Assembly (NCBI GenBank): GCA_025558095.1
Contig: JAIVFI010000033.1
Coordinates: 496,001 to 560,000, forward strand
Origin: Hyaloraphidium curvatum SAG 235-1
Lineage: Eukaryota; Fungi; Monoblepharomycota
Direction of reading: 5' to 3'
DNA length: 64,000 nt
In this document: in pieces, positions 23,221 to 49,800 of the stretch
Numbering within the stretch: position 1 is the first letter of the stretch
Layout: the number at the start of each line of letters is the position of its first letter
The notes under the pieces: generated by a model
Databases searched by the model: none
Told to the model about the DNA's origin: nothing
Seen by the model: only the letters and a program-made list of their open reading frames with translations
Translations under genes and position numbers: made by a program

Positions 23221-23390
23221 CGCGCGGAGTAACCGGGGGGAGGGAACGGAGTTTGACGCTCTGGCGGTGACGTGGCGCGTGGCGCGAGTGAGGTGGAACA
23301 TTCCGCTCATCCGATCTAAACAGCGGCTCTCCACAGAGTATAGTTTGGAATTCCATTTGCCGCGACAGAGCAATAGGACCAACTACCCAG

Positions 23391-26280
23391 CTACGAACCG
23401 TGTACCCTGAGCTTCCTCCCTGTCACCGACCCCTCGGGCCACACCGTCATCTCGAGCCGTACCAACAACGTCTCCTCCCGCACCACCTCCGACCTCTTCC
23501 TCCGGAAGGCCGGGTTCCAGTACTCTACCCTCACGGACATCTCGATCTGCACCCGCGTCGGCCCGGCGGTGTCCACCCCTTCCTGCAGCACATCCACGCT
23601 CGCGAGTCTGCCCACGTTGACCCTGACCCCCACCCGCGAGCAGGTGGTCCCCGAATCCGTACCGGCGTCCGGGCCCCACCAGCACTGGTTCGGGTCGTAC
23701 AGAATGGCCGAACCCGTGGGGGGGAACGACAGGGAGGCACCCAACGTCGTCCGGGCGCCACTTAGCCACAGCACGCGGCGGCGCCAGGGGCCCTGCGGGC
23801 GGTCCGGGAGCACGAGCGTCGCCTGCCGGATGCGTACGACCCAGATAGTTGCCGAGGTCCGCACGCGGATGGCCCACAATGCCCAGTCGCCGGGGTATAT
23901 CGGGTTTGCGCCGGAGACGATCTCCGCCGTCGCCGTGGGAGCGGCCACCGCGCCCGCCACGTTCCTGTTGGCATGGCACCATCCGTCCGGCTCCGCAATC
24001 GCCGCTTCGACCTGGAACCGGGGGAGCTCCGGGCACGGCAGATCGCAGCGGGGCGCGAAGCTGACGCCGTAGGTCCCGACCGCACCGCACCCTTCCGCGA
24101 CGGCTACGACGATGCTTCCCGCCACCGACTCGGTGGTATCTGCAGGCTCCCGCGAGACGTCCACGCTCCACGCAAAGTCCCCGGCTAGAACCTGCCACTG
24201 CCCCGGCGTGGCCGAGTCGTAAAAGTACGACGCGCCAGGCTCGAGGTCTGGCGAGCCCGCGGCGGGGCCGGACGTCGAGAAGCCCCAGAGGACATCCGGC
24301 CACAGCGTGGAACACGGGCCGATCACGACGGCGTACCGGTGCCCGTGGCGGAGGGTGACAGCGGCGAGCGGTTCGGGCGCGAGGAACGGGATCGCCGGGT
24401 TCGTGTTGATGTCGGGATGGCCGAAAGACCCGATTGTTCCTGTGGCGAGCGGAGTGCCGGACGGAGGGGCGGGCTGCAGGCCCGAAGAGGCACTATACAG
24501 GGCCACGGGGCAGTCGAAGCTCTCGGGGAAGAGGCCCGATGCGAGGGTGATGCGATCCAGGCGGAGGTTGGAGGAGGAGCCGACCGTGAAGGTGGCCGCA
24601 GCGACGCCGGAAGCAATGGATCGGTTGCCAGCCACGGTCATGGAGCTTCCGTCCAGGGCGGCGTTCACGCCGACGAAGATGGGTGATTCCACCTCGAGGT
24701 CGAAGAACCAGTAGGCGCCGTTGCCCTCCGTGAGCCATGGCGACCCCGGCCCGTCTCTCCAAAGCCCAAACGAAGCGTCGTAACCGTTGCTCTCGAGAAC
24801 AATGGCCGAGACGTCGCCCCAAATGTCGGGGCTCAACCAGACGTTGGAAGAAATCTGGCTGCAGCCCAGCATCGCCACCGCGTACGATGTCCGGGGCTGC
24901 ATCACATAAGCCGTGATCTGCGGGAGGATCTGCCTGTCGAGCTCGGAAATGCGTAAGCCCAAACCGTTGGTTGAAGCAAACGCGGGCAGCACCACGCCCT
25001 GGTCCCGCGCGAGGAAGGTGGTGGTGGCCTCGTCCTGGATCGTGCCGCCGGGCGCCAACACGAGGGCAAAGTCGCACACGGGGTTGAAGGCGCCGTTGTT
25101 GTTGAAGAAAGACGTGCGGAACGCCCGGATGCGGGAGGGGCCCGGGCCCGTGGTGAAGACGTAGGCGTAGTCGGGGTGGGGTATGCCGCCATACTCCGCG
25201 TAGCTGTCAAGGTGGAACATATTGATACCGTAGCCCCGCAGCAGGCTGGTAGTCGTGATCTGCCGAAGACTGCCGGTGAGGGCGCCGCGGCCACGGCATT
25301 CGAAGAAGGAGACCCACATCATCGCCCAGCACAGCCGGAGAGCCGGTGGAGGTGCCCAATGCCGGCATCATTGTGTAATCAAGCCGGGAGTAGGTTGCGT
25401 TGAACCCGAGGAACATCTTCGTGTCACCGCCCGGCTGGCCCGGGAAAGTCACGTTGAACGCCGAGAATCCGATCTGCTGCATGGCGTTGAAGGCCGAGTG
25501 GGAGGCGCGGAAGATGGCGTACATCTCCTCGGGGGTCACCGTGCCCACGTAGACGCGGAAGTCGTCGGCCCAGCCGGGCCACGCCGTGTTAGCCGTGGTG
25601 CCGATCAAGGTCTGGGTGATGTCCGACATGTCGCCCACGCCGCTCATCACGGTGGCCCCGCCGACGTTGAGGCCGTTGATGTACATCCTGGCCTCCTTTC
25701 CGACGCTGGTGACGCCGACGTGGATCCACTTTGGCACCGACGGGCTGCCGTAGATGTCGGGCGCGCCGGCCTGCAGGCTCTGCAGGTCGGTGCCGGTCCA
25801 GATGTCCGCCTCGAACCTGCCGAGGCCCACGCCGAGATACAGCCGCGCGTCCCTGAAACCGGGCCCGATGGCGTCGATGAGAACCCCGCGCTCCTGGTCG
25901 CCGACGTGCGGCCAGATCCACGCGATGACGGCAAAGTCTTTGGTGCCGATGCCGTTGAGCAGGCCGTCGACGGCTATGCTGCTGCCTGGGTAGAGGGCGT
26001 CGCGGGCCGGCACCGAGCCTTGCAGCGGGTAGAAGTCGGCCACTCCCTGCCCGCCGCCGACCGTGCCGCCCGGGGCGGGCACGTTGCCGCGGCACGACAC
26101 CACGCCGATGGCGGCATCGAAGGCGAGTCGCTCATACAAAATGGCCGACGAGAGCGTCGGGCCTTGCCCGTACGTGCAGTTGTGCCCGGCGTCGGCAAGG
26201 CGGAGCCGGGCGGACAGGGACACAAAGAGCGCCGCCGCCGCCAATCGCAGGCGCCCCCAAGGCCGCCGATGCGGGCCCAT
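23391..26280 (-). CDS. Secreted LamG/ConA-like domain protein, copy 1 (head A, tail x)
   Basis: Signal peptide; LamG motifs DFAVIAWIWP, KWIHVGVT..MYING, GWADDFRVY; intron 25260-25317; tail CDLPCPELP..EPDGWC..GRKLRVHGS. Confidence 0.85.
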
Positions 26281-26357
26281 CTCGGCGTCCTCCTACCGGG
26301 CGGCCACGCGTGAGCCGCCCGAGACCGGGCCGTAACACGGTGGGAAAAGAGGGTTGG

Positions 26358-26365
26358 GCTAAGCC
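26358..26365 (-). promoter_or_regulatory. GGCTTAGC upstream motif of LamG copy 1
   Basis: The same 8-mer lies ~85-90 bp upstream of the ATG in all four LamG genes. Confidence 0.5.
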
Positions 26366-26479
26366 CACCAGCCTGGGGCGGCGGCCTTGCGGGGGCCATA
26401 TCAGACCCTGGCGATGACGCCCACCTTTTCGGCCCTCCCGGGAGCGTGGAAAGCCGAGTTCTTGATGCGTGAGCAAAGG

Positions 26480-27350
26480 AGTGGAAGCGATCAGTGAGGT
26501 GTTGACTTCCAGGGCGGAAAGAAGCGCGCTGGCGCCCTCGTCCCCGATGGAGTTCAATTCCAGGTCCAGGCTGGTCAACGCCAAGTTCCTCTTCAGCGCG
26601 TCGGCGAGCGCGCGGGCACCCTCGACCCCGATGGAGTTCCTGTAGAGGTTCAGGGTCGTGAGCACCGAGTTGCCCTGCAATGCTTCCGAAAGCGCGCGGG
26701 CGCCCTCGCTGCCGATGGAGTTGCTCACAGGGACAGGCTCTCGAGCGCCTTGTTTCCCTTCAGCGCGTGCGCGAGCACGCGGGCCTCGCCGTCCCCAATG
26801 GAGTTGGTGGCCAGGCTCAGGATCTTGAGCGTCTTGTTCCCCTTCAGCGCCTCCGCGAGCGCGCGTGAACCCTCGAACCCGATGGAGTTGCCGCTTAGGT
26901 GCAGTGCCGTCAGCACCGAGTTGCCCTTGAACGCTTCGCCTAGCGCGCAGGCCTCCGTGTCGCCGAGTTGCTCGTACCCCGCCTGGAGCTCCGTCTGCCC
27001 CGTGAGCCTGGTGCGCCAGTGCGCGGGATCGGCCTTCGACGTGGGGGCGAGCGCTTTCGGGGCTGGCGTCGGAACGGCGGAGAGTGGACCTGTGGTCGGA
27101 ACCGGCGCCACGGGGGCAGTCGCGGCGGCCGGCTGCTGCTTGATGGCGCGGTTGATCTGTTGGAGGAGCGATGGGGATATGTCGTTGGAGCTCAAATCAA
27201 GCTCCACCAAGGATCGGTTCAGTTCGAGCGCCGAAAGGAGCGCGCGCGCGCCCTGGTCCCCGATGGAGTTGCGGCCCAGGTCCAGTTCCGTCAGTGTTGT
27301 GTTTCCCATGAGCACCTCTGCGAGTGCACGCGCGCCCAGGACCCCGATGG
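26480..27350 (-). pseudogene. LRR gene fragment #4 (no kinase), frameshifted
   Basis: About seven 28-aa LRRs and the family N-cap ADPAHWRTRLTGQTEL; frame break near 26727; truncated at both ends between the two divergent LamG genes. Confidence 0.8.
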
Positions 27351-27727
27351 CGGCGCGGGGATGGCGGGCGCGGCATCCGGCCAACCGGGGAGCTCTCGGC
27401 GGAGTGTACATCAGTCCCGAAGCACGTCAGCGGGTAAAGAGACGCGGCACCCTGCTTCTTCTGATCAACCCTGTTCCTGCTTGCGACAGGAATGGACACG
27501 AAGTTCTGGAGGTCAGCTCATCACATTTCCATCGCCGGACTCGAAGCTTGGATGGCCGAATGGCGTATCAGGAAAGCGGCACAACCCAAGCCCACGAGGG
27601 CAAGAAGAGCCCGGGTCACCAAATGGCAGTCTACCGTCCTCTCCGCCCTAAGCGTGATTACTCTAGTGCAACTCAAAAATTGATGCGTCGCGTCAGCTTT
27701 TCGACCGAGTGGCGGCCGCGCGCACGG

Positions 27728-27735
27728 GGCTTAGC
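27728..27735 (+). promoter_or_regulatory. GGCTTAGC upstream motif of LamG copy 2
   Basis: 8-mer 90 bp upstream of ATG 27818. Confidence 0.5.
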
Positions 27736-27817
27736 CGAAGTCCAAATCCCGAGTCAATCGATGCGCCTGCCGTACCGCCGGCCCAGGGGTTCCGGCGACG
27801 GGCCTAGGCGCGCCGCG

Positions 27818-30712
27818 ATGGGTCCGCGCCGACGGACTCCGGGGCGTCGGCGATTCGCGGCGTCGGCGGCGCTGGTCGTGGTGTCCCTGTGGACGCTGCT
27901 CCGCCCGGCAGCCGCCGCGCACAACTGCACCTACGGGCCCGGCCCCACGCTCTCCTCTGCGATTTTGTACGAGCGCCTGGCGTTCGACATCGAGCTCGGC
28001 GTGGTGTCCTGCCGGGGCAATGTCGCCGCCGTGGGCACCGTGCTGTCGGACATTGTCGAGCTGACGGCTGCGGTCCCCACGCGGGACGCCCTGTTCCCGC
28101 AGGAGTCCCAGCAGGGGGGACTCAACGGACTTCTGTTTGTCAACGGGCTGATGAACGGCATCGGCGCCCGCGACTTTGCCGTCTCGGCGTGGATCTGGCC
28201 GCACATCGGCCCGGGCGAGGACCGCGCCTACCTGATCGACGCCTACGGGCCGGGCGGGTTCAACGACCTTCGTTTCACGATGGGCGTGGGGTTCGGCGTT
28301 TTGGAGGCTGCGGTGTGGACCGGCAGCTCCCTCCAGGGCGGCAACAGCGGCCAGGCCGTCGAGGTGGCGGGCCTGTCGAGCGTGCCCAAGTGGATCCACG
28401 TCGCCGTCACACGCACGGGGACGGAACTCAACTTCTACATCAACGGCCGCGACACGGGCACCGGGGCCGAGGTGCAGGCCGTCGGCGACTTTTCTGACAT
28501 CGCCAACATCACCATCGGCACGCAGCGCATCGGCGTCGCCTCGGCCAACCGCTGGTTGGGTCAGGTCGACGACATCCGCGTCTACGTGGGCACGGTATCC
28601 GCCTCCGAGATCTACGGCATCTTCCGCGCCTCGCACTCGGCGTACAACGCCATGCAGCAGGTCGGCTTCTCTTCCTTCAACATGACCTACCCCGCCGCCC
28701 CGGACGGCGATACGAAGATGCACCTCGGATTCAACGCCACCTATGACAGGACCGACTACTCGCTAACGCCGTCATTGGGCACGACGACCGGTCCGCCCGC
28801 CGTGCTGGGCGACGATGTCACCTTCACCGGCCCGCTCCGCGGCTTTGGCATCAGCATGCTGACGCTCCTCACCGACGACCAGGCCTTCCCGTTTGGTGGC
28901 TTCGAAAACGTCCACAACGCATGGGTTTTCACCACCGGGCCCAGCCCGTCGCGGATCCGCACCTTCCGCTTCATAATGTGGCCCGCCAGCAACTCCTACT
29001 CGAGCATCACCTGCGACTACCTGCTCGTCGAGGCGCCCGGCGGCGTCCCCGCGGGCGACACCATGACACAGTACCTCGCCAAGGACCCCGCCGTCAGGAT
29101 CCCGAGCTTCGAGGCTCCCATGTTCGGCTACACGCGCCCGGAGTTCGGGCGCAACCTGCTGCCGCAGATCACGTCGTACGTGATGCAGCCGTCGACGACC
29201 TACGCGATTACGGCGCAGTCGTGCGACAAGGGGGTCATCTACGTCATGCTGTCCATGGGGGCGGCGGCGTCCTTCACCGTGCTGGGAAACGGCTTCCAGA
29301 CCCTGCCAGGCATGCGGAACGATGGGCCCGGGGATTACTGGCGTAACCTCGGGATGCAGGACAACATGTGGCCGTTCGACCTGGAGGTGGAGACGCCCGC
29401 TTTCCAGGCCGCCGACGCCGCCCTGGACGGTACTTCAATGACCGTGGCCAACTCGAAGCCCGTGACCACGGCCTTTTACGTCGCCACCTCCTTCATCGTC
29501 GGCACGTCCAACCTCCGCCTCGACAGCTTCACGATCACCATGGGCTCCCCGCCCGCCGTTCCGGGCTCCCAGGGCTTCACCTGCACCGTCGAGCTGTACC
29601 GCGGCACCACCACGGGGCAGCCCGGCGAGCCCACCGGCGCCGCGCTCGCGACGGGCAGCGTGCGCCGCAAGGACTACGCGGATACCACCTCGGTGTTTTC
29701 CTTCCAGGCGCCCGAGGCGCTGGCCGCCGTCACGCTGCGCAAGGGGCAGCGGTACGCCTTCAAGTTCGGGCCGTGCGACACGGACGGCCTGTCGTGGGCG
29801 TACTCGGAGTCGGGGGCGCCGGCGGGGTCGCCGAGCGCGGAGCCGGGCACCTCGTTCGCCTACGAGCCGGAGATCACCTCGTGGGTGCCCGTCGCGGGGG
29901 ACTTTATCTGGACCGCGAGCTTTTCCAAGGAGCCGGCGGGGACCACAGAGACGGTGACGGGCAGCATGTCGGTCGCGGTCCCGCAGGCGGGATGCGGCGC
30001 GGTGGGGACCTACGGCCTCAAGTTCACCCCCTCCTGCGACGCGCCGTGCCCGGAACTGCCTGCGTTCCAGATCGACGCGGCGGTGGCGGAACCGGACGGG
30101 TGGTGCCGCGAGAACGCGACCTCTTCGACCTCGTTCGACGCGCCCACGGCCACGTCGTCGGTGGCGGAGCCGGACCCAAGGTACCCCGGCGACTACGCGG
30201 TCTGGGCCATCCGCGTGCGGACCTCGGCCGACATGAGGCGGGTGCTCATCCGCAACGGCACCCTCCTCCTCCCCGACCGCCCCGAAGGCGACCCCTGGCG
30301 GAGCCGCGCCCTGCGCACCACCGAGGGCGGGTTCACGCCGCTGGGTACCGCCGCGTCGTTCGGCACCGTGCCGGTGGTGCTCGACCGGCCCACGGTGCTC
30401 TACGATCCGACCGTGTGCATGTCGGGCCCCGACCCCGGCATGGATACGGGACCGTATTGCTCGCAGGCGGGGTTTCTGGTGACCGTGGGGAACGACCCGG
30501 CGGCGTACGTGCTCGAGGACGGGGTGGACACCGGGCTGACGCGGGTGGCGCTGGAGGTGTTTCTGGCCGTGCAGTACTGGGACGAGCCGATCCCCGCCCG
30601 CAGGAGGAGGAGGAGGGCGCAGGTGGAGCACGTGCTGGCGGTGCGGCTCGAGACGACGGTGCGGATGGGGAGGCCGGTGACGGGGAGGAAGCTCAGGGTG
30701 CACGGTGCTTAG
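27818..30712 (+). CDS. Secreted LamG/ConA-like domain protein, copy 2 (head B, tail x), intronless
   Basis: MGPRRR..signal peptide; DFAVSAWIWP, KWIHVAVT..FYING, GQVDDIRVY; continuous ORF to GRKLRVHGA. Confidence 0.88.
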   Translation: MGPRRRTPGRRRFAASAALVVVSLWTLLRPAAAAHNCTYGPGPTLSSAILYERLAFDIELGVVSCRGNVAAVGTVLSDIVELTAAVPTRDALFPQESQQGGLNGLLFVNGLMNGIGARDFAVSAWIWPHIGPGEDRAYLIDAYGPGGFNDLRFTMGVGFGVLEAAVWTGSSLQGGNSGQAVEVAGLSSVPKWIHVAVTRTGTELNFYINGRDTGTGAEVQAVGDFSDIANITIGTQRIGVASANRWLGQVDDIRVYVGTVSASEIYGIFRASHSAYNAMQQVGFSSFNMTYPAAPDGDTKMHLGFNATYDRTDYSLTPSLGTTTGPPAVLGDDVTFTGPLRGFGISMLTLLTDDQAFPFGGFENVHNAWVFTTGPSPSRIRTFRFIMWPASNSYSSITCDYLLVEAPGGVPAGDTMTQYLAKDPAVRIPSFEAPMFGYTRPEFGRNLLPQITSYVMQPSTTYAITAQSCDKGVIYVMLSMGAAASFTVLGNGFQTLPGMRNDGPGDYWRNLGMQDNMWPFDLEVETPAFQAADAALDGTSMTVANSKPVTTAFYVATSFIVGTSNLRLDSFTITMGSPPAVPGSQGFTCTVELYRGTTTGQPGEPTGAALATGSVRRKDYADTTSVFSFQAPEALAAVTLRKGQRYAFKFGPCDTDGLSWAYSESGAPAGSPSAEPGTSFAYEPEITSWVPVAGDFIWTASFSKEPAGTTETVTGSMSVAVPQAGCGAVGTYGLKFTPSCDAPCPELPAFQIDAAVAEPDGWCRENATSSTSFDAPTATSSVAEPDPRYPGDYAVWAIRVRTSADMRRVLIRNGTLLLPDRPEGDPWRSRALRTTEGGFTPLGTAASFGTVPVVLDRPTVLYDPTVCMSGPDPGMDTGPYCSQAGFLVTVGNDPAAYVLEDGVDTGLTRVALEVFLAVQYWDEPIPARRRRRRAQVEHVLAVRLETTVRMGRPVTGRKLRVHGA

Positions 30713-30987
30713 TCCGTTCGGTTGTGCTCGATCTGGGTCTGTTGATGTATCTGCTGTCTCATGGATCGTTTATTCGGATGAGCGGCCGCGTCCTCCCTGG
30801 CCGATTTCGGATGCAATCGCGATGATCGAATGATCGCAGCTCCTCCGTTCCGGCCCGCGCCGCCTCATCGTCGGCCCCCGGTGCCAGCAACGGCAAGCCG
30901 GTGGGCAAGGTCACCTGGGCGGGCATCGTGGATTCCCCCAGGATAAGAAGAGCAGGGCCCGGGTCACGGGGCTGGTCAAGGCGCTTG

Positions 30988-31151
30988 CGGAGATGGACGC
31001 GGTGCCGCCCGAGGAGATGGTCACGGTCGGCGTCGAGGAGGGGGAGGAGTGATGCCGGGTTGCACCGTGGTCCGCATGGGATCTTGATTCACGACGCGTG
31101 GATGACATTGCAAAAGATGCTCGAGACAAGACGTGGCTACAGTTTCCCTCT
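30988..31151 (+). repeat. 164-bp direct repeat, left copy (right copy 36156-36319)
   Basis: cggagatggacgcggtgccgcccgaggag...gtggctacagtttccctct occurs twice with roughly a dozen differences. Confidence 0.9.
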
Positions 31152-31336
31152 TCGATCCCCGGTTTTGCGGATCGGGCCATTGGAAAGACCCTGGCGATGA
31201 CGGCCACCTTTCCGGCCTTCCCGTGAGCGTCAAAATCCGAGTCGCAAGATGCAGAGGCATGAAAAAACGAGTGGAAGCTGCCGATCAGCGTCCTCAATGA
31301 GGAGCTAGCAATCCCACCGTACACTTAGAAATCCCC

Positions 31337-32330
31337 CTACGCCCCAAGAATCAGCTCCTCATCGACATTCAAACCAAAAGCGACCGGCGCGGGGGCCGGA
31401 GCGTTGACAGCGGCGGCTTCGGTGCACAGCTGAAGCCAGTGTTGGAGTTGGGCCGCGACGCCAAGAGCCCAGGCCACCGCGATCCGTTCGCGGAAGCGCC
31501 GCACAAAACGAGAGTAAAGGCCATCGAGGTCCACGGGCTGCCCATCGCGGCCGACGATCCCGGGATACTGGATGCGCCCCATCTCCGAGGAGAAGCGCGA
31601 GAAAGTGTCAGAGACAGCGCTGTACGAATCAAAAGCAATCACGATCAGAGGGTAGAAGTTGGCGTTGAAGACGAAACGGGAGTAGTCCTTCCTGGCGGCC
31701 TCGACCCGCCGTTCGACTGCGTGGCCCGGGACCGAGAAGACCAGGCCCGTGTGCAAGTGGGCCATAGAGGTGAGGGTCTTGATTTCGAGCAACCACCGTT
31801 TCCGGGTTTCGCGGTGCGTGATGAGAACGTCGCCAAGGCGGCCTGCATCCGCAGGCGTGGGCGGGGTGACAGTCTTGTAGCCATGCGCAAGGAGGTTTGG
31901 CGGCATGGGGTGCACGCGGAGGAGCGGGATGGAGCGAAGCGCCGCGCGGATGGCCGCGCAAATGTCGTCGTGACCAGGACTGAAGAGATCCCGGCCATAG
32001 CAGCCCGAGAACGCGTGCTCCCCCGTCAGCGACATGGCCGATCGCTTGCAGCCCCGCCGGCAGGGCAAGGAAAGACCAGGGTAGTCGGCCTCGTGCAGGA
32101 GCGGGAGGCAAAGCCGGAAGCGTACAAGTAAGCGGAATAAGTTGTTGCGAATGTGGTTGGCAAGCAGCGCGGGAGAGGCAGTCAGGAAAGCCGACAGGCC
32201 GTCCTGCGCCTGGACGAGCCGCTTGCGGCGCTCCAGACCGGCGGAAGTGTCGGGTTGCAAGGCAATCAGAGCCGCGAGGCGCTGGCGCCTCTCAGCCTCC
32301 AATTCCACGCTGCGACCGACGCGAGCAAGT
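31337..32330 (-). mobile_element. 5'-truncated RLE-type non-LTR retrotransposon (CRE-like) C-terminal region
   Basis: SAFLTASP..LFRLLVRFRLCLP; CCHC knuckle CRRGC..GEHAFSGC; degenerate RH motif GHDDICAAI; PD-(D/E)xK-like RLGDVLI..LLEIKT; RKDY; FRERIAVA. No RT domain in the window; GC is visibly lower than in the flanking genes. Confidence 0.7.
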
Positions 32331-33003
32331 TTCGAGCCATCGGACGCAGGGACGGTAAATGCACCAAATTGTTGACTGTCTGGTGCTACTTCGACTGGCG
32401 ATGCCTGGTTTGCAATCCTTGATTCATGTTTGTTCGGCGGCCTTATCCTATGATGCGTTCCCAAAGATACCAACGCCGCTTCATTGGATGGAAGCCGGAC
32501 GTACGGTCACGTTTGGATCGAGCAGCTTGACCATCGCCAGCGGAGCAGTTTTGTTCGATCTGTTCTCGTCCGGCACCGGCCGACAGAAGAACCGGTCTGT
32601 GCGTTGCCACTTTGCGGACGCCCCTGTGTCACACCCCCAAGCAAGTCAGCGAGTAGAGAGACGCAGCAACCGCGGGGATCGCATGGTCATGTTGCGCGTG
32701 GTGTTTGGAGGTCATCGTGCGGAATGACCGCGGGAACGGGATGGAGTTCAGGTTGTTGACGCGGCGTCGAGTCGCCATGCGCTGCCCCGTGATGCCATTT
32801 CCCCCGGCAGCGACCCGGGACCGTTGGCCCGCAACCGCAACCGTCCCCACAGTCGCGTTGTCGGGCGCGCGGCCCTCGGCATCCTCCGCGCCACGGGCGC
32901 GCCGCGACCGCAATAAGGAAGCATTTGCTCGGCCCCGGCCCGAGAAGGAAACGGCGGTGCGCGGTGAACGAGAGCCGGGCGGTCCCGCGACGCGACGACT
33001 TCG

Positions 33004-36000: not shown

Positions 36001-36080
36001 GCTGGGCGATGGATGCCGGAGCTCGGCCGGGGTTTGGGGAGGTCGCGGACGAGCTGAGGAGGATCCTTGATGCTCTGTGA
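33004..36080 (+). pseudogene. LRR-kinase #5 (~7 LRRs, long charged spacer, coiled coil, non-RD kinase); frame break after the LRRs
   Basis: N-cap DSAAYWRQRLAGRTQL; LRRs; frame break near 33660; kinase with altered G-loop [30 protein letters not shown]; introns 35313-35362 and 35699-35754. Confidence 0.78.
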
Positions 36081-36155
36081 GCGGCGAAACGATTCTGGGT
36101 ATTGGCGGGACTCGATGTTCTCGTGTATCTTCTTCCTTTGGATGCTTGGGCCTTT

Positions 36156-36319
36156 CGGAGATGGACGCGGTGCCGCCCGAGGAGATGGTCACGGTCGGCA
36201 TGGAAGAGGGGGAGGAGTGATGCCGGGTTGCACCGTAGTCCGCATGGATATCTTGATTCACGACATGTGGATGACATTGCAAAGATGTTCCAGACAAGAC
36301 GTGGCTACAGTTTCCCTCT
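36156..36319 (+). repeat. 164-bp direct repeat, right copy; overlaps the last codons of the TauD gene
   Basis: See 30988-31151. Confidence 0.9.
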
Positions 36320-37459: not shown

Positions 37460-37664
37460 GGCGGCTGCCGGCGCGCCGACCTCCACCCGCGCAGCACTGT
37501 CCGCTTCGGGGCGCCCTCCTTTCTTTGCGGTCGAGCGGTCGGCAACCTGCTCCGCTGCTTTGGGAGCGTGCGGTTTCGCCGAGGGCTCTCTGGACAAGGG
37601 ATCGAGTGAGTGGCGGCGACCGCTGGGAGACATCGAATCTCCGTGCGCCCTCCGCCGCCGAAGC

Positions 37665-39009: not shown

Positions 39010-39411
39010 TGGTGACGGGAAGCAGCAAGGGTGCTGTTCGTCGCAGTCACGGCGTTGTTTCGGTGTTTCCGCGTTCGAACACTCTCGGTGTCGTCATGAC
39101 ATGCTCATGATCTGCCCGACCTGCCACACTTGCTGCCTCCCCAGCTTCCCAGCCCTGTGTCCTAGCCATCCACGTCAAGGACTCGGGAACACCGTGTCGG
39201 CGGCAGTTGGGTCCGCAAGCATCGCGGTGGCGTCTTGGCCCCCCATCGTCTCCTTTCTGCAGCGCCTACAACCAATCATCACCGACGTTCTCGCTCTTCC
39301 CTGTATGAGGTTTCTAGCGCATCGATCGCCGGGACCATTCTGGAGAGCTGGAGGCGGCCGACCGTGCGGAACGACCGCCAACTGTCCCCCGTCCGCCCCG
39401 CTCCCACAGCC

Positions 39412-40116
39412 ATGGCCCCCCTCCCGGGCATCCTCCAGTTCATCACGTCGCTCGTCGACGGCGACGGCAAGCCCGTGCCGGCGGACGTTCTGGACTCGCT
39501 GCGGGACAAGGCCGTCGGGTGAACCGAACCGGGCCGCGGGTCCGGACGAATGGGCTGACCGGAGGGAGGGCAGGCTGTACTTCTCGGCGCTGTGGTGTCC
39601 GCCGTGCAGGCAGTTCGCGCCGAGTGGGTTCCGTCGGGTCCGTCGCTCGCCGCAACGGAAGGACGGCCTGACTCCGGCCCTCGGCCGGCAGTGCTCGCCG
39701 ACTACGCCTCGGCCCGCTCCAAGGACCTCGCCATCGTCTACGTCTCCAACGACCACTCGGAGCCCGAATTCCTCAAAAACATCGCCGGCAAGCCCTTCCT
39801 CGCCGTGCCGTACGCGGACCTCCGCGCGAGGCAGATCCTCTCCACCGCCCTCGAGATCGCCTCCATCCCGACGCTGGCCGTGTGCGAGCCCGGGACGGGG
39901 CTGGTGGTGAGCTTTGGGGGGAGGGAGGAGGTGACGTACCACAAGATGAGGAGGGCCGAGGATCCGCTGGCCAAGTGGGTGGGCAAGGGGGCCAAGGGGA
40001 ACCTGGAGGAGCAGGAGGAAGAAAGGAAAAGGAAGGAGGCCGAGGGGGGCGAGGGAGGGCAGGGAGGGGAAAGCAGTGGGTTCCACGCGGTGTGGGCTGG
40101 GCGTTCACTGTGCTGA
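39412..40116 (+). CDS. Nucleoredoxin/tryparedoxin-like thioredoxin-fold protein
   Basis: LYFSALWCPPCRQF; IVYVSND; SIPTL; two short introns (~39519-39573, ~39625-39691). Confidence 0.85.
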
Positions 40117-40224
40117 CCGCCCCGTACCCTTCGCCAGAGCTCTGAATCTCTTGCAAGGTGGACTGTGGTATCATGTGCCAGTTTCAATGAAGTAGATGTC
40201 TTCATCCTCCCGTTGCTTCCGCCC

Positions 40225-41557
40225 TCAGTAGACGGCCGACGCCCTCCCGCCGTCCTCGACCTCCTCCGCCTCCTCGACGCTCTCCCGCAGGTCCCTTACG
40301 TACTCCTCCACCGCGCCCTCGTGCAGCAGCGACAGCATCAGGTGCAGCCCGGGCGGCTGCCTCACCATCCCCGGCACCCATCCGCGGCGCGCCATCCCCG
40401 CGGCGATCGCGTCCGCGGACTTGCGGGGGTGCCCGAACGACACGATCGTCAGGTCCGGTTTCCCGTAGACCCGCATCCCGGGGACGCCCTCGATCCCCTT
40501 CACGTACGCTTCCCTCGTCGCGATCAGCCTCCTCGCCATGGCCACGTAGCCCTCCCTCCCCAGGTACCGCAGCACGGCCCACGCGGCGGCGACGGCGCCG
40601 CCCGGGCGGGTGCCGGCGAGCGTGTGCGTGGCGAAGCGGCCGTTGGGCCAGACGTCGAGGTCGAGGAGCTGGTGGGCGTGGAGGGCGGGGGTGCGGTAGA
40701 AGACGGTCGAGGCGGGCTTGGGGCACATTCCGAACTGCCGACCGGGAGGAGGCGTTAGGGGGTCGGGAGAGCCAACGAGTGGCGTTGCGGTGAAGCACCT
40801 TGTGGAGGTCCGCGGACAGGCTCGACACGCCGGGAAGGGCAAAGTCAAAGTCCGGGATGGGCAGCCCCAGGTCGCGCGCGAACGGGGCGAGGTAGCCCCC
40901 CACGCAGGCGTCCACGTGCAGCCACACGTCCTTGGAGATCGCCAGCTCCGACAGCGCTGGGATCGGATCGACGACGCCGTAAGGGAAGCAGGGGACCGAA
41001 CCGACGATCATGATGGTGTCGGCGTCGATGGCGGCGGCCATCTTCGAGACGTCCGCCCGCAGGTCCTCGCCCACGGGCACCCGCCGCACGGGGAGGTCCA
41101 TCAGCGCGGCGCCCTTGTCGAAGGCCGGGTGCGCCGTCACGGGAAGCACCAGGTTGCCTCTGAACTGGGAATCCCCCCGCTTCTGCCTGCTGTGGTCGCG
41201 GCACGCCTTGACGGCCATCACGATCGACTCGGTGCCGCCCGACGTCATGTTTCCCTGCGCGCCCGGCGGGCCGAGGAAGAGGTCCAGCGCCATCGCCACG
41301 ACCTCGTCCTCCATCCTCCTCAGGCTGTGGAACGCCCTCTTGCCGCCCAGCGCGTTTTCGGAAAAGTACGCGTTGAAGGCGGCCTGGCCGACCTCGGCGA
41401 CGCCCTCGACGGCGCCGAAGACGTAGAGCGGCACGCGTCCGGCCTTCCACGCGGCGTCGCCCTCTTTCATGTCCTGCAGGCGCGATGCGACCTCGGCGGC
41501 CGGCAGGCCCGACGCCGGGAACCTAGTCTGCGATTCGCTGGCGTCCGACGCGGGCAT
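40225..41557 (-). CDS. PLP-dependent group II enzyme, sphingosine-1-phosphate lyase-like (no N-terminal TM)
   Basis: TSGGTESI; AHPAFDK; FPYGVVDPI; HVDACVGG; SADLHK(FG) PLP lysine; GTRPGG; intron ~40735-40798. Confidence 0.85.
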
Positions 41558-41681
41558 ATTGAGGGAATAGAGGTGCTAGCGGGTTAGTTGAGGTGATTCG
41601 CGGGAGCCGCCACCGATCAGTCTCCCGCGACTGCCTCCCGCCCTCCTTCGCTGCCCATCGCGCGTCGTCATTCTCTGAGAG

Positions 41682-43114
41682 ATGGCACCGGGCCCGCGTC
41701 CCTCCCTGCTCCGCCCGCCCGCGCCGGACGTCGACCGCATGGGCGCGCTGCTCCCCTTCGACGACCCGGCGTGGATGCAAGACTGGTTCTCGCCGTACCA
41801 CTCGGCCTCGCACTTTGCCCTGGCCCGCTTCGTGCGCGCCTTCATGGAGGAGGAGATCCTGCCGCACGTCGAGGACTGGGAGGAGGCCGGCGAGGTCCCC
41901 GATGCGGTGTTCGGCAGGTTCGCCGAGCTCGGCCTGGTGGCGCTGCATTTCGCGCCCGACGACCCGGAGGTGTACGACCTGCTGCCGGAGGGGTTCCCGA
42001 TCCCGGCGGGCCTGCGGAGGGGTGACATCGATCACTTCCACAAGGTGGGCCGGCCTGCAGGGGGGCCTTTCATCGAACTGACGGCCTTCACCTGCCCTGA
42101 CGGCAGATGATCCTGCTGAACGAGCTGCACCGCGTCGCGTCGGCCGGCGTCATGGCGGGCTGCTATTTCGGCGGGAACGCCATGTCCCTCCCCTGCGTCC
42201 TCCGCCACGCCACGGACTCGGTGCGCCGCCGCGCCGTGCGCGAGGTGTGCTCCGGCCGCGCGAGGATGTGCATCGCCGTCACGGAGCCGGGCACGGGCAG
42301 CGACGTGGCCAACATCGAGTGCTCGGCGGTGCTATCGGAAGACGGGAAGCACTTCGTCGTCAACGGCACGAAAAAGTGGATCACGTACGGGCTCAGGTCG
42401 GACTACTTCCTCACCGCCGTCCGGACCGGCGGCCCGGGCGCGTCGGGAGTCAGCCTCCTGCTGATCGAGCGCGCGCACGGGGGCGTGCTCACGCGGCGCA
42501 TGAAGATGCAGGGCGGCCACGCTTCCCAGACGACGTTTGTCGAGTTCCGCGACACCAAGGTGCCCGTCGAGAACCTCGTGGGCGAGCTCGGCAAGGGCTT
42601 CCGCCTGACCATGGCCAACTTCAATTCGGAGCGGATCGACATGCTCGCCGGCGCGCTCACCTCCTCCCGCGTCGCGTACGGCGAGGCCCTGCGCTACGCC
42701 TTCGTCCGGCGCACCTTCGGCAAGCTGCTGATCGAGCACCCCGTGATCCGCGCCAAGCTCGCCGGCATGGTGCGGCAGATCGAGTCCGCGCAAGCGTGGC
42801 TGGACCTCCTCGTGCACCAGCAGTCCCGGTTCGCGCGGCTCCCCGGAGGCCGCGAGCTGTTCGACGACCGCGCGGCCCCTGCCATCGCGCTGCTAAAGGC
42901 GCACGCGACGCTCGTGATGGAGCACGTCGCCCGCGAGGCTGCGCAGATCTTCGGCGGGCTCGCGTACACGCGAGGGGGCCGGGGCGGCACGGTGGAGCGG
43001 GTGTACAGGGACAAGAACTGGTACGCGATACCGGGGGGCAGCGAGGAGATCATGCTGGATTTCGCGCTCAGGGACGGGATGAAGAAGGCGAGGGGGATGG
43101 GGGCCAGCCTGTGA
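41682..43114 (+). CDS. Acyl-CoA dehydrogenase
   Basis: IAVTEPGTGSDVA; VNGTKKWIT; FNSER; RRTFGK; QIFGGLAY; IPGGSEEIM; intron ~42045-42105. Confidence 0.92.
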
Positions 43115-43426
43115 GGTGCTGGCCGCGGGGGTGCCGGGTCGGGACGGCGACGGTGTGCGGGAATGGGTGCCGCAGTCCGCGCTCCGGGACCGGTGCTATC
43201 GAGCGATGCAGGCATTAGGGAACCGATTTGGGCGGCATAAGGATGGGGTGCGGACGGATGTTTCCGGCAAGCTGCCACCGAATTGACCCGGACGGGTCGA
43301 AATGACACTCTCCAAGAGCCAGAGCACTCTTCTTTGCCTAATGTGACATGTTGAAGTTGCCGGCAGACGGAAAGGAACGAGGACCGACGCTGCTGGCTCC
43401 GCTTGGCGTACAGCCGCAGGCGGCGG

Positions 43427-43434
43427 GGCTTAGC
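43427..43434 (+). promoter_or_regulatory. GGCTTAGC upstream motif of LamG copy 3
   Basis: 8-mer 87 bp upstream of ATG 43514. Confidence 0.5.
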
Positions 43435-43513
43435 AGGGTTCCCCCGTCTTCACACACACACCGGACAGAATGGAGCCCAAATGGCCCCGTCGGTCCTCCT
43501 AGACGACCGCAAT

Positions 43514-46461
43514 ATGTCTCCCGACCGGCGCCCGCGGGGGCGGCCCCGATTCGCGGCGGGGGCTGCGTTGCTTGCGGCATCCCTGTGGACTCTCTTCCGC
43601 CCCATTGCCGCGGGCCACAGCTGCACGTACGGGCAGCCGACCCTCTCCTCGGCGATTCTTTACGAGCGCCTGGCGTTCGACGTCGAGCTCGGCGTGGTGT
43701 CTTGCCGGGGCAATGTCGCCGCCGTGGGCACCGTGCTGTCGGACATTGTCGAGCTGCCCGCCGCGGTCCCCACGCGGGACGCCCTGTTCCCGCAGGAGTC
43801 CCAGCAGGGGGGACTCAACGGACTTCTGTTTGTCAACGGGCTGATGAACGGCATCGGCGCCCGCGACTTTGCCGTCTCGGCGTGGATCTGGCCGCACATC
43901 GGCCCGGGCGAGGACCGCGCCTACCTGATCGACGCCTACGGGCCGGGCGGGTTCAACGACCTTCGTTTCACGATGGGTGTGGGATTCGGCGTTTTAGAGG
44001 CCGCGGTGTGGACCGGCAGCTCCCTCCAGGGCGGCAACAGCGGCCAGGCCGTCGAGGTGGCGGGCGTGTCGACCGTGCCCAAGTGGATCCACGTTGCCGT
44101 CACCCGCACGGGGACGGAGCTCAGCTTCTACATCAACGGCCGCGACACGGGCACCGGGGCCGAGGTGCAGGCCGTCGGCGACTTTTCGGACATCGCCAAC
44201 ATCACCATCGGCACGCAGCGCATCGGCGTCGCCTCGGCCAACCGCTGGTTGGGTCAGGTCGACGACATCCGCGTCTACGTGGGCACGGTATCCGCCTCCG
44301 AGATCTACGGCATCTTTCGCGCCTCGCACTCGGCCTACAACGCCGTCCAGCAGGTCGGCTTCTCGAGCTTCAGCGTGGCCTACCCGGCCCAGCCCGGCGG
44401 CGACACGCAAATGTACCTGGGGTTCAACGCCACCTACGACAACACGTACTACATGCTGATGCCGTCGATGGGAACCTTCACCGGTGCCCCGGCCACAGTG
44501 GACCAGGTGGGTGTTCGTGTTGCGTTCCGCGCCGGCTGCACGCCGACGCGCCCCTCCAGGTCGTCACGGGCCCTCTGCGCGGTTTCGGCATCAGCATGCT
44601 GGCACAGCTGGACTTTTGGCGTCCGGATGCCGCCATCGCCACAGGCGGCTCCGCCTGGGTGTTCACCACGGGCGACCTCCCTTCCCGCATCCGAGTGCTC
44701 CGGCCCGATTTCACGCTGGACGGAAACACCCAGGCGCCCGTGTGCGACTTCTTTCTGGTAGAGGCACCCAACGGCATGATACAGCAGGAGGTCACGCAAA
44801 CGTTCCTTGCCCAAGACCAGGCTGTGGCGCTGCCCCAGTTCGAGCGCGTCGGTGCGGTGGTCCACCCCGTCCGCCCGGAGCTCGGGCGCGGGCTGCTGCC
44901 GCAAATCACGAGCTACGTGATGGCGCCGAGGACGACGTACGCTGTGGCGACGGCGTTCTGCAACGTCTTCCAGATCCCCTCGTACGTCGAAGCCGCTGGC
45001 ATCGGGTCGATCCTAGTGACGGAGAGCGGCTTCGCGGCACCGCTTTCGCTGGTGAGGACCGGAATCGGCGAACCCTGGTACTCGTATGGCACCGGCATCT
45101 ACCTCCTCTTCGACATCGAGGTCGAGGCGCCCGGTTTCCAGGGCGTGGACAACGCCGTGGATGGGGCGGCTTTGGTGCCCGACGGCGGCTATCTCATGAA
45201 CGCCGAGGCTGCCGTCGCTGCCTCCTTTACCGTCGGCGCTTCCAACCTCCGCCTGGACGGATTCACGATCCGCTTCTACGGCCCCGCCCTTCCCGAATGG
45301 TTCAGCTGCACCGTGGAGCTGCACCTCGTCGACACGACACTCAGCCCGCCCCTCCCCACCGGCCCCGCCCTGGCCACGGGCTCCATCCTCGCCTCGGGCC
45401 ACTCCACCTCCCGCACATCCCTCTCCTTCATGGCCCCCGAGGCGGTGTCCGCCGTCACGCTGCGCCGGGGGAAGCGATACTCGCTCAAGGTCGGCCCGTG
45501 CGACATGGATGTCTCGTGGGGGCACGCCGCCGCGGTGCCGTTCCGCAGGCGGCGCCGCCAGGGGCCGACGACCACCTCGGACGTGTCGCTGGACCCGTGG
45601 TTCCTGTACCTCGTGGGCACGGCCGAGTGGATCGCCGCCCCTGCGTACGACCTCCTCTGGAGCATGGACGTATCCAAGGAGCCGACGTCGGTGGAATCCG
45701 TGACGGGCCGCTTGGTGGTCACTCTCCCCCCGAACCAGTGCGGCACCAGCGGGACGTACGGCGTCGCGTTCACGCCTTCGTGCGACCTGCCTTGCCCGCA
45801 GCTCCCGGCCTTCCAGGTCGACGCCGGGGTCGCGGAGCCGGACGGGTGGTGCCGCGACAACAGGACCGCCGCGCCGTTCGGCGTCGGACCGCACACGGTC
45901 ACCGTCACGGAGGTCCCCGGGCCGGCGATCAGGTATCCCGGCGATTGGGCCCTCTGGTACCTGCGCGTCGTCACCGACGGGACCCACATGAAGAGGGTGG
46001 TGGTCCGCAACGCCACCTTGGAGCTCCCTGACCGGCCGGAGGGGAGCCCCTGGCGGAGCCGCGTGCTGTGGTTACCCAGCGGAGCGATGCCGCTGGGCAC
46101 CGCCGTCGGCTTCCCCGACGGCCTGCCCGGCACCGAGGGCGTGCTGTACCGGTTTCCTACGGACTGTGCCGCGGGCACGGCGAACGATACAGGGGCGGAC
46201 TGCGCGCGGTTCGGGGTGCGGATGAGCATGGGGAACTCCGAAGACAGCTACCTGCTGGAGGAGGGGGTGGACACGGGGACGACGAGGGTCGGGCTGGTGG
46301 TCAATGTGGACGTGGAATACTTCACGAATGCGCCGTCGCCAGGTCGGAAGAGGTCGGAGGGGGGCGGGCGGACGGCTTCGCTGGAGTTGCGGGCCGAGAC
46401 GACGGTGCGGATGGGGAAGTCGGTGGCGGGGAGGAAGCTCAGGGTGCACGGTTCGTGGTGA
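43514..46461 (+). CDS. Secreted LamG/ConA-like domain protein, copy 3 (head B, tail y)
   Basis: Head nearly identical to copy 2; intron 44507-44559; tail ends GRKLRVHGSW. Confidence 0.87.
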
Positions 46462-46805
46462 TATTTGGCGCTCTTTCTCATGGTCTGTAGTTGAAATTGC
46501 TGCCTGTGTCGTTCCCCGAGAAGAGATGCTTTGTCCGCAGTGAATCTCGGTTGGCACTGTGATGGTTTGCTTTTCGGACAGCTAAAGCACCGCTTTTCTA
46601 GGGGGCGAAAAGCAGCCGCTTTTCGCTATCTTGACCCCCCCTACTGTGAGCCGACGATGAGACGTCTTTGGTCGTCCCCGAAATGAATGCCTAGGTTCCA
46701 TCTTTTTCGGATTTCGGATTCCGGTTTCTAGGCGCACATTGGCGGAAACAAGTGGCAGCGGCTGACGATTCGAGGTCGCACCCAAGGCCCGATCCGCGGC
46801 ACGGT

Positions 46806-46813
46806 GGCTTAGC
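46806..46813 (+). promoter_or_regulatory. GGCTTAGC upstream motif of LamG copy 4
   Basis: 8-mer 90 bp upstream of ATG 46896. Confidence 0.5.
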
Positions 46814-46895
46814 GGGTCCACCCACCTTTCCCTTGCCCCCTCCCATGGTAGTGCCGGTTGCCCGGGTCCTCCGAGACCGGCAGACTGTGGCGGCG

Positions 46896-49800
46896 ATGAG
46901 CCCGCATCGGCGGCCGCGGGGGCGCCTGCGATTTGCGGCGGCGGCCCTCTTTGCGTGCCTCTCCGCCCCGCTCCGCCTTGCCGCCGCCGGGCACGACTGC
47001 ACGTACGGGCAGGGCCCGACGCTCTCCTCGGCCATTTTGTACGAACGCCTCGCATTTGACACCGTCGTTGGCGTGGTGTCGTGCCGCGGCAACGTGCCCG
47101 CCCCGGGCGGCACGGTCGGCGGCGGGCAGGGAGTGGCCGACTTCTACCCGCTGCAAGGCTCGGTGCCGGCCCGCGACGCCCTCTACCCGGGCGACAGCAT
47201 CGCCGTCGACGGCCTGCTCAACGGCATCGGCACCAAAGACTTTGCCGTGATGGCGTGGATCTGGCCGCACGTCGGGGACCAGGAACGAGGGGTGCTCATC
47301 GACGCCATCGGACCCGGTTTCAGGGACGCGCGGCTGTACCTCGGCGTGGGGTTCGGCAGGTTCGAGGCCGACATCTGGACCGGCACCGACCTGCAGAGCC
47401 TGCAGGCCGGCGCGCCCGACATCTACGGCAGCCCGTCGGTGCCAAAGTGGATCCACGTCGGCGTCACCCGCGTCGGAAAGGAGGCCAGGATGTACATCAA
47501 CGGCCTGAACGTCGGCGGGGCCACCGTGATGAGCGGCGTGGGCGACATGTCGGACATCACCCAGACCTTGATCGGCACCACGGCCAACACGGCGTGGCCC
47601 GGCTGGGCCGACGACTTCCGCGTCTACGTCGGCACGGTGTCCCCCGAGGAGATGTACGCCATCTTCCGCGTCTCCCACTCCGCGTACAACGCCGTGCAGC
47701 AGGTCGGATTCTCGGCTTTCAACGTAACCTTCCCGGCCCAACCGGGCGGGGACACGAAGATGTTCCTCGGGTTCAACGCGACGTACAATAACACCATCTA
47801 CAAGCTGACGCCTTCGAGCGGAACCTCCAGCGGCTCCCCGGCCGTTCTGGGCGAAGACGTGAGTTTCTCCTGGCATCCCGGCGCGGGCCGCAGGCTGACG
47901 ACGCCGCCAGGTTGCGGTCAGGGGCCCGCTCCGCGGTTTCGGCATCAACATGCTCGGACCCCCATTCAGTTGGCCGTACGGCGGGTACATTGCTCAGAAC
48001 CACGCGTGGGTCTTCACCACGGGCGACCTCCCCTCCCGAATCCGCGTGTTTCGGCCCGACTATACCTACGACGGGAACGTAAACGGGCAGCAGTTCGTGT
48101 GCGACTTCGTGCTCGTTCTGGCACCGAACGGCATGATCCAAGGCGAGGCCACCGAAACCTTCCTTGCGCGGGACCAGGGCGTCACCGTGCCCCAGTTTGA
48201 GCGGCCCGACCAGCCGGTGCACCCCGTCCGCCCGGAGCTCGGGCGCAGCCTGCTACCGCAGATTACTTCGTACGTGATGGCGCCCCGGACGACGTACGCC
48301 GTCGCGACGACGAACTGCAACATTGCGGCCTTCGCCAGCTACATCTTGCCCGGCGACGTCGGGCCGATCCTCGTGACGGACAGGGGCTTCAGTGCGGGGT
48401 TCGCGCTAATGAGGAACAACTACGGCGAAGCCTGGAGCAACTACGGCGGTCTCTACCTCTATTTCGACCTCGAGGTCGAGAACCCCGGTTTCCAGGGCGT
48501 GGACAACGCCGTGGACGGATCGGGCTTGGTACCCACGGGCGCCTACCCCACGGGTTGGGGCGTCAACGACATCGCAGCCTCCTTCACCGTCGGCCCCGCC
48601 GACATCCGCCTTGACCGCTTTACCATCCGTGTCCAGAACCTCACGCTCGACTGGTTCTCCTGCACAGTGGAACTGTACAGCGTCTCCTCCGGCCAGCCCG
48701 CTCTCCCCACCGGCCCCCCCCTGGCCGCGGGACAACTGATGGCCTCGGGCCATTCCGCCACCGCCACCTCGCTCTCCTTCATGTTTCCGGAGACGGTGGC
48801 TGAAGTGCTGTTGCGCCGGGGGCAGCGGTATTCGTTCAAGATCGGGCCGTGCGACCATGACGGGCTGTCGTGGGCGTATGTGACGACCCCGGGCCGCCGC
48901 ATCCGGCGCGGGCCCGTGACTAGTGGCGACGTTTCTGTGGATACCGGATTGTCGTACGACTCGTCGACGGGGCAATGGAGCACAATCCCCGCCGGGAACG
49001 AGCTGATCTGGAGCATGGACATCTCGAAGGAGCCGGTGCCGCCCTATGATTACGCGACGGGGAGCGTGGTGGTCGCCTTTCCCGCGGGACAGTGCGGTGC
49101 CACGGGCACGTACGGGGTCAAGTTCACGCCCTCGTGCGACCTGCCGTGCCCGGAGCTCCCCCCTTTCCAGGTCAACGCGGCGATCGCGGAGCCGGACGAA
49201 TGGTGCCGCGACAACAGGACCGCCGCGCCGTTCACCGTGGGCCCGCACACCATCACGGTGACCGAGGTTCCGGGGCCGACGATCAGGTATCCCGGCGATT
49301 GGGCCCTCTGGTACCTCCGCATCCGCACCGACGGCACCCAGATGAAAAGCGTGGTGCTCCGCAACGCCACCTTGGAGCTGCCGGACCGCGCCGTGGGGAG
49401 CCAATGGCGGAGCCGCGTGTTGTGGTATCCCGGCGCAGCGATGCCGTTGGGCAATGCCCTCAAGTTCCCGCCGGGGGGCAGCGAGATCCTTTACCAGGTC
49501 CCCAGCACGTGCGCCGCGGGCACGGCGAACGATACGGGGGCCGACTGCGTGCGGGTGGGGGTCAGGCTCAACATGGGAAACTCCCCGAACAGCCACGCGC
49601 TACAGGAGGGAGTCGACAGCGGGCTGACGAGGGTCCGCCTCGTGCTGAGCGTCGACGTCAAGTATTGGGATGAGACACAGCCAGCTCGGAAAAGGGACTT
49701 GGGAGGTGGCGGGACGGAGGCGCTCGTTGTGCGGGCCGAGATGACGGTCCGGATGGGGACGCCGGTGGCGGGGAGGAGGCTCAAGGTGCACGGTGAGTAG
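46896..49800 (+). CDS. Secreted LamG/ConA-like domain protein, copy 4 (head A, tail y)
   Basis: Head nearly identical to copy 1; intron 47859-47910; tail ends GRRLKVHGE. Confidence 0.87.

Follow-up and report, generated by a model that had tools for sequence, protein, structure and literature searches.

Probable interlocus gene conversion of the LamG heads in a family of predicted secreted proteins of the fungus Hyaloraphidium curvatum

The LamG genes of the window

The stretch of DNA analysed here, called the window below, is 64 kb long and comes from the GC-rich, early-diverging fungus Hyaloraphidium curvatum (G000:C33:496001-560000, in an assembly of 31.9 Mb and 55 contigs). It holds four intact paralogous LamG genes, copies 1 to 4 (c1 to c4), and each paralog of the family encodes a signal-peptide-like N-terminus and a Laminin_G_3 head in exon 1, followed by a tail in exon 2. 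The heads are of two types, A in c1 and c4 and B in c2 and c3, and within each type they are nearly identical. The pattern is very probably the outcome of two recent and independent interlocus (ectopic, non-allelic) gene conversions, about 0.6-0.9 kb long and restricted to exon 1, on a family of five paralogs.

Copies 1 and 2 are divergently oriented and copies 3 and 4 lie in tandem. Copy 1, on the reverse strand, has its signal peptide and type A head in exon 1 (25318..26280; 321 amino acids, aa; PF13385, E=1.6e-12), a 58-nucleotide (nt) phase-0 intron with GT..AG ends at which the frame switches from head to tail (25260..25317), and its tail in exon 2 (23391..25259; 622 aa, stop at 23391-23393), an open frame that aligns with the other tails. 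Its splice sites restore GDD|ITTTSLLRGYG, which is homologous to the uninterrupted copy 2. That copy, on the forward strand like the two that follow, is a single coding sequence with a type B head (27818..30712; 964 aa plus stop), its head passes into its tail at 28816/28817 without an intron, and its translation is identical to the public protein P0001. Copy 3 has a type B head in exon 1 (43514..44506; 331 aa; PF13385, E=2e-16), a 53-nt GT..AG intron that was predicted and then found to be skipped by an RNA-type contig (44507..44559), and a tail in exon 2 (44560..46461; 633 aa plus stop). Copy 4 has a type A head in exon 1 (46896..47858; 321 aa; PF13385, E=1.2e-12), a 52-nt GT..AG intron that is likewise skipped by an RNA-type contig and has the same junction in the public model P0004 (47859..47910), and a tail in exon 2 (47911..49800; 629 aa plus stop).

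A six-frame search of the whole genome found only five loci of the family, all with full head and tail in open frames. The fifth paralog, c5, lies on another contig, C12 (locus L006, G000:C12:772140-776969; exon 1 at 3368-4324 and exon 2 at 1498-3318 within the locus, both on the reverse strand), and is the most diverged, with 46-50% aa identity in the head and 37-40% in the tail.

In copies 1, 3 and 4 the reading frame of the head is not that of the tail, and a spliceosomal intron lies between the two at one phase-0 site (58 nt in c1, 53 nt in c3, 52 nt in c4 and 49 nt in c5). A bacterial reading with frameshifts is ruled out by these GT..AG segments of 49-58 nt at the same site, which are skipped exactly in RNA-type contigs. 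Since c5 and three of the window copies keep the intron, it is ancestral and was lost by copy 2. The loss was precise, possibly mediated by complementary DNA (cDNA), and was an event separate from the c2/c3 conversion described below, because the intron site lies 70-190 nt beyond the c2/c3 tract.

Two bounded tracts of near identity in exon 1

Between the conserved blocks that flank the head, c1 and c4 differ at 12 of 237 aa columns and c2 and c3 at 8 of 247, as opposed to about 115 of 253 between types A and B. At the DNA level, the young core shared by c1 and c4 is 96.8% identical (18 differences in 560 nt; c1 26106-25547 against c4 47070-47629) and that shared by c2 and c3 is 97.6% identical (16 differences in 656 nt; c2 27968-28623 against c3 43661-44316). 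Type A and type B cores share only about 58% of their nucleotides, in identical runs of at most 22 nt. An earlier reading of this DNA, made from the sequence only, had described the two strongly different head types and their distribution over the four copies in the same way, and the motifs that it quoted are all present where it placed them.

Both patches have definite ends. The maximum chi-square interval for c1 and c4 runs over 25396..26281 (-) in copy 1 and 46895..47780 (+) in copy 4, with 94.0% identity inside and 53.5% outside. Within it the similarity is patchy: over about 885 nt from the ATG, identity is 90.6% down to position 26165, falls to the cross-type level, 79.3%, in an island at 26164-26107, rises to that of the core, and is 90.1% beyond the core down to 25396, after which it drops to 50%. 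The c2/c3 tract covers 27968..28623 (+) in copy 2 and 43661..44316 (+) in copy 3, and its flanks are 70% and 81% identical. Both tracts are internal to exon 1 and end in two conserved coding blocks. Identity falls on both sides of each tract, on the 3' side 70-190 nt before the intron is reached, and neither a single crossover nor exon shuffling at the intron fits this pattern. Copies 1 and 4 are inverted relative to each other and 21 kb apart, while c2 and c3 have the same orientation and are 16 kb apart.

The flanking blocks (ERLAFD..GVVSCRGNV and DD.RVYVGTV/SHSAYNA) are 76-84% identical in nucleotides in all pairs, in agreement with the earlier claim that the heads are bounded by sequence conserved in every copy. 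The two young cores end within about 30 nt of each other on both sides (alignment columns 424-1013 and 394-1049), and this coincidence of two independent young tracts in the same blocks speaks for a selected exchange of cassettes, in which two head types are kept and repeatedly re-assorted onto tails through dedicated conserved flanks so as to diversify a recognition repertoire. We regard such a system as improbable. The blocks are conserved protein motifs also in c5 and in two distant relatives, P0005 and P0006, and for this reason they are ordinary constrained coding sequence marking where homology ends, not dedicated recombination signals; the tract ends may coincide merely because homology stops there.

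Conflict between heads and tails

The site patterns of the two exons disagree. In exon 1 (nt 0-900), 186 quartet-informative sites group c1 with c4 and c2 with c3 (14|23), 3 support 12|34 and 2 support 13|24; downstream, in the tail, 12|34 dominates with about 150 sites. In a permutation test of the Sawyer/GENECONV type, the two fragments scored 192.6 and 183.0, whereas the highest scores among the permutations were 31 and 32 (p<0.0005 for each tract).

The same contrast appears in the synonymous (dS) and nonsynonymous (dN) divergence. In the head core, dS and dN are 0.117 and 0.018 for c1/c4 and 0.079 and 0.009 for c2/c3, as against about 0.5 and about 0.42 between types, whereas tail dS is 0.60-0.88 across all pairs, including 0.85 for c1/c4 and 0.60 for c2/c3; for c3/c4 the tail gives a dS of 0.60 and a dN of 0.28. 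Purifying selection alone as the cause of the head identity is ruled out by dS, and a recent duplication of whole genes is ruled out by the tail dS of 0.6 or more. The heads appear to have been under purifying selection after conversion, with dN/dS of 0.11-0.15 within the tracts and about 0.8 between types A and B.

Maximum likelihood (ML) trees with c5 as the outgroup place the heads as ((c1,c4) 96/99, (c2,c3) 100/99) for the head core and the tails as (c5,(c2,(c1,(c3,c4) 100/100) 85/92)). Approximately unbiased (AU) tests rejected, for the head, the groupings c3+c4 (p=1e-68) and c1+c2 (p=4e-70) and, for the tail, c1+c4 (p=2e-5) and c2+c3 (p=2e-22). A tail clade of c1+c2 was not rejected (p=0.145) and is absent from the best tree. 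The sequence-only reading had proposed sliding-window identity, separate head and tail trees and a comparison of dS as checks on conversion, and these gave internal patches of high identity with bounded ends, incongruent trees and a dS that differs between head and tail of the same pairs.

That reading had also sorted the tails into two classes, so that the four copies would form all four combinations of two heads and two tails. Part of this survives. The tails of c3 and c4 do pair, with 64% aa identity, and hardly any window along the tail has a closer pair. No class unites tails 1 and 2: c1/c2 identity (48.5%) is hardly distinguishable from that of c1/c4 (48.2%), c2/c3 (46.7%), c2/c4 (45.4%) and c1/c3 (45.1%), and most of the sites that c1 and c2 share are found in c5 as well. 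When rooted with c5, 16 aa sites in the tail have a derived state in c3 and c4 with c1, c2 and c5 ancestral, compared with 7 specific to c1+c2, 12 to c2+c3+c4 and 8 to c1+c3+c4. Two of the shared motifs, TTGP.PSRIR and W.(I/L)R.RTSA, are ancestral since they also occur in this outgroup. On such patterns the tails of c1 and c2 branch deeper than the c3/c4 pair, close to a trichotomy. Instead of a two-by-two mosaic, the locus thus has four individually diverged tails, of which only 3 and 4 are sisters, and two recently homogenised pairs of heads.

Within the c3/c4 pair, a sub-region of exon 2 (codons ~450-540; ~45900-46170 and 49250-49520) has 83-88% nt identity and a dS of 0.30-0.34 compared with 0.5-0.9 elsewhere. 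This is suggestive only, and may reflect an older and smaller conversion between tandem neighbours or stronger constraint.

Soundness of the assembly

Independent data came from Logan contigs of three public runs of the same organism, one of which, X1, behaves as RNA. An 820-nt X1 contig joins 44287-44502 to 44556-45159 and skips 53 nt with GT..AG ends, and a 792-nt X1 contig joins 47600-47858 to 47911-48386 and skips 52 nt (47859-47910) with GT..AG ends, both with zero mismatches. For c3 and c4 this confirms the introns, transcription, and the linkage of the 3' part of the head to its own tail.

These data bear directly on whether the combinations are real at all, as repeated heads could have caused chimeric joins in the assembly. 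The near-identical heads (560-656 nt) exceed the length of short reads, and at four positions of the c3 head (43757, 43759, 43762 and 44188) the contigs have letters of the c2 type, showing that k-mer assemblies do mix the two. However, the assembly has only 55 contigs for its 31.9 Mb, the heads of a pair can be told apart at 16-18 positions of the core and have unique sequence on either side, and the RNA-type contigs bridge head and tail without a mismatch in both c3 (44287-45159) and c4 (47600-48386). Moreover, an assembly swap would yield identical heads and not heads that have diverged by 2.4-3.2%. We therefore consider an artefact of this kind very improbable.

The X1 contig that splices copy 4 also skips 70 nt in exon 2 of this copy (48387-48456), a length that is not a multiple of 3, with ends that read CT..AC and hence GT..AG on the opposite strand. 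The skip may stem from an intron in an antisense transcript, from a chimeric k-mer path or from a rare isoform.

Interlocus gene conversion and its alternatives

Conversion of the LamG head is the explanation that we favour with high confidence because a bounded patch of high identity, a dS that is five or more times below that of the flanks, incongruent trees and the permutation result all go together. In outline, the tails of c3 and c4 are sisters, most simply through tandem duplication, and of the two conversions one was between c1 and c4, with the young core of about 560 nt inside the patchy tract of about 885 nt, and the other between c2 and c3, over about 656 nt. In each case a double-strand break in one head would have been repaired from a paralogous head, with homology supplied by the conserved blocks or by earlier rounds of conversion, and the tails, which are less than 65% identical in nucleotides, would have diverged too far to be involved. 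On a scale set by the distance to c5, the branch lengths put the A/B head split at a depth of 0.74, the c3/c4 tail split at 0.23 and the c1/c2 tail split at about 0.6. No split among the four tails thus appears to be older than the A/B split, and c3, c4 or both would then carry a head other than the one inherited when they duplicated.

Several observations weigh against this explanation or limit what it covers. Interlocus conversion tracts are typically tens to several hundred bp long and strongly dependent on identity (PMC3924818). It follows that homogenisation within a type (A-A or B-B) is easy and that a direct replacement of A by B across a core of about 58% identity is hard; this speaks for repeated homogenisation within a type, which does not account for the original swap. 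The support from contigs covers the head-tail junctions of c3 and c4 only. With a GC content at third codon positions (GC3) of 0.85-0.93, dS is compressed by extreme codon bias, and ages are only relative. Lastly, the tail contains a faint excess of 14|23 over 13|24 (about 62 against 31 sites; 43 against 23 among nt patterns rooted with c5), which the simple history does not predict.

The last of these points would be accommodated if the head tree were the true history. In that case an old block duplication made c1/c4 and c2/c3 real pairs, concerted evolution was limited to the head, and the tails of c3 and c4 were homogenised by an older conversion of the whole tail. An unbroken exchange between heads of the same type would also supply the high identity that conversion needs (PMC3924818). 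Against this, such a history requires more events, namely a block duplication, the inversion of one gene and a tail conversion of 1.9 kb; the closeness of c3 and c4 across nearly the whole tail, with a fairly even dS of 0.3-0.9, looks like that of a plain tandem duplicate; and the AU tests reject both 1+4 and 2+3 for the whole tail. We find it unlikely.

Some further features point towards the selected cassettes mentioned above. Both head types have been retained, the dN/dS of about 0.8 between them is accompanied by indels in predicted loops, and the patchiness of the c1/c4 tract hints at more than a single event. Yet there are only five genes and two head types in the genome, no silent cassettes were found (all copies are intact, with c3 and c4 expressed), the tails do not fall into two classes, and the observed effect of both events was to homogenise a pair, so that conversion made paired heads alike no less than it re-assorted them. 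The cassette-like gene conversion of the sequence-only reading thus stands as far as conversion of the head is concerned and not as a cassette, there being no silent donors and no dedicated flanks. A related proposal is that the LamG head is a swappable module, of which selection keeps two functionally distinct types that are moved among four or five diverged tails by way of the flanking blocks. We give it little credence, but if it were true, the family would amount to a small combinatorial repertoire of secreted binding proteins in an early-diverging fungus, and recurrent exchange would have left its marks in the near-coincident tract ends and in the patchiness of the c1/c4 tract.

Relation to known systems

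The mechanism is of a known kind, and no new mechanism is added here. Trypanosome VSG (variant surface glycoprotein), Neisseria pilE/pilS and Borrelia vlsE are programmed cassette systems of antigenic variation. As in those systems, a segmental conversion replaces a variable part between conserved flanks; in contrast to them, the H. curvatum copies are all complete and separately promoted, with no silent partial archive and no single expression site. The major histocompatibility complex (MHC) is a polymorphic cluster of recognition genes with intergenic exchange.

The closest parallel is interlocus gene conversion between paralogs in general (PMC3924818), including the Tigriopus GOT1 paralogs (PMC3728101). 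The shared features are an internal tract that was copied, presumably without reciprocity, from one non-allelic paralog to another, high identity and low dS in the tract, incongruence with the flanks, ends where homology drops, and the capacity to create new combinations of gene parts. In H. curvatum, however, almost the same domain segment was affected in two pairs of genes whose DNA is otherwise 35-55% diverged, the members of one pair are inverted relative to each other, and with 560-885 nt the tracts are among the longer ones reported for interlocus conversion. The plant RPP8 family of nucleotide-binding leucine-rich repeat (NLR) genes (bioRxiv 10.1101/694240) is similar in that putative recognition genes are clustered and exchange between paralogs re-assorts a variable domain. 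It differs in that the H. curvatum case is known from one genome with two head types only, and the protein family is unrelated.

What the locus offers is a textbook-clean and statistically overwhelming example of domain-restricted interlocus conversion in the little-studied Monoblepharidomycetes, together with a warning that trees of this LamG family depend on the exon used. It also defines a lineage-restricted family of predicted secreted proteins that public annotation handles poorly. If other isolates were to show further exchanges of heads, the locus could serve for the study of how domain borders channel recombination.

Protein architecture and relatives

For the protein searches the exons were used separately, and the naturally intron-less copy 2 was the full-length query. 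All four heads match PF13385, the Laminin_G_3 family of the concanavalin A-like lectin-glucanase superfamily, at 48.2-60.9 bits (gathering cut-off 27.6), and the head is predicted to be all-beta. P0002, P0005 and P0006 match this family too. Unlike other members of the superfamily, it is attached to a tail of about 620 aa that has no relative in Pfam, PDB or the ESM Atlas. The tails (607-633 aa) have ten conserved cysteines and no transmembrane segment and are rich in beta strands. Pfam gave no family for the tail, even when it was searched per module at E up to 10; PDB gave only chance matches by sequence, and nothing in the ESM Atlas matched at 0.9 or higher. The AlphaFold2 (AF2) model of the tail reaches a predicted local distance difference test score (pLDDT) of 50.6, and its Foldseek matches in PDB are generic beta-sandwiches with template modelling (TM) scores of 0.1-0.2, which are meaningless. 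For the head, AF2 gave an all-beta model with a predicted TM score (pTM) of 0.59, but its mean pLDDT is only 50. On this low-confidence model, identity between types A and B is 61% in strands and 48% in loops, which is a weak trend (Fisher p=0.06).

In a word search of 5.8 billion proteins, only H. curvatum proteins were matched. An exhaustive profile search with the five tails added two proteins, P0005 from a metagenome and P0006 from a Logan contig (E ~3e-24), both made up of a signal peptide, Laminin_G_3 and, of the tail, no more than the final ~250 aa. The preceding part of the tail, its first ~350 aa, appears to be species-specific. It weakly matches a pair of small proteins (E of 6e-5 and 7e-4), and one of the pair, P0008, has a bacterial-type PEP-CTERM motif. 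By the word and profile protein searches, a single genome holds the full family. Among the matches listed in a literature search for H. curvatum, there were only mitochondrial or unrelated genomes.

About 35-40 aa before the C-terminus, each tail has a run of basic residues (RRKRS, RRRRRR, GRKRS and ARKRD in c1 to c4, at approximately 23430-23520, 30590-30640, 46330-46380 and 49680-49720; SRKRD in c5), which is followed by a conserved strand-like peptide ending in GR(K/R)L(R/K)(V/T)HG. P0005 and P0006 have a similar basic site. The dibasic site looks like a candidate for Kex2-type processing. Taken together, the N-terminus, the LamG domain, the cysteines and this site lead us to predict a secreted, lectin-like binding protein with a putative role in recognition or adhesion.

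Public gene models and neighbouring features

Three public models were found for four of the loci, one of them fused to a neighbour and one truncated, and a search for contigs encoding the public protein models found no record. The model P0002 (1274 aa) joins copy 1 (23391-26280, reverse strand) to an unrelated downstream gene (22093-23382, reverse strand) by splicing over a stop. Since the skipped stop (…RKLRVHG-stop) is conserved in all five paralogs, the fusion is probably an annotation artefact. P0004 is copy 4 truncated at the N-terminus, and its junction, GED|VAVRG, agrees with the copy 4 intron.

An open frame with leucine-rich repeats of the RNI type (LRR_6) lies on the reverse strand between the divergent copies 1 and 2 (26132-27411), and an intact LRR-kinase is present at 20019-21992, also on the reverse strand. 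The LRR-kinase family has more than 100 six-frame matches in the genome, several of them on the same contig as the LamG genes, and with a family of this size a functional link between the LamG genes and the kinases is unsupported. Directly downstream of c5 is a protein-kinase gene with a signal-anchor-like N-terminus.

The element GGCTTAGC was not found upstream of c5 on C12. In the 64-kb window it occurs only four times, with about one occurrence expected by chance, at 26358-26365 on the reverse strand and at 27728-27735, 43427-43434 and 46806-46813 on the forward strand. Every occurrence precedes a LamG start codon by 85-90 nt, has the orientation of the gene and sits within otherwise unalignable DNA, and the element may be a candidate promoter or transcription start site (TSS) element.

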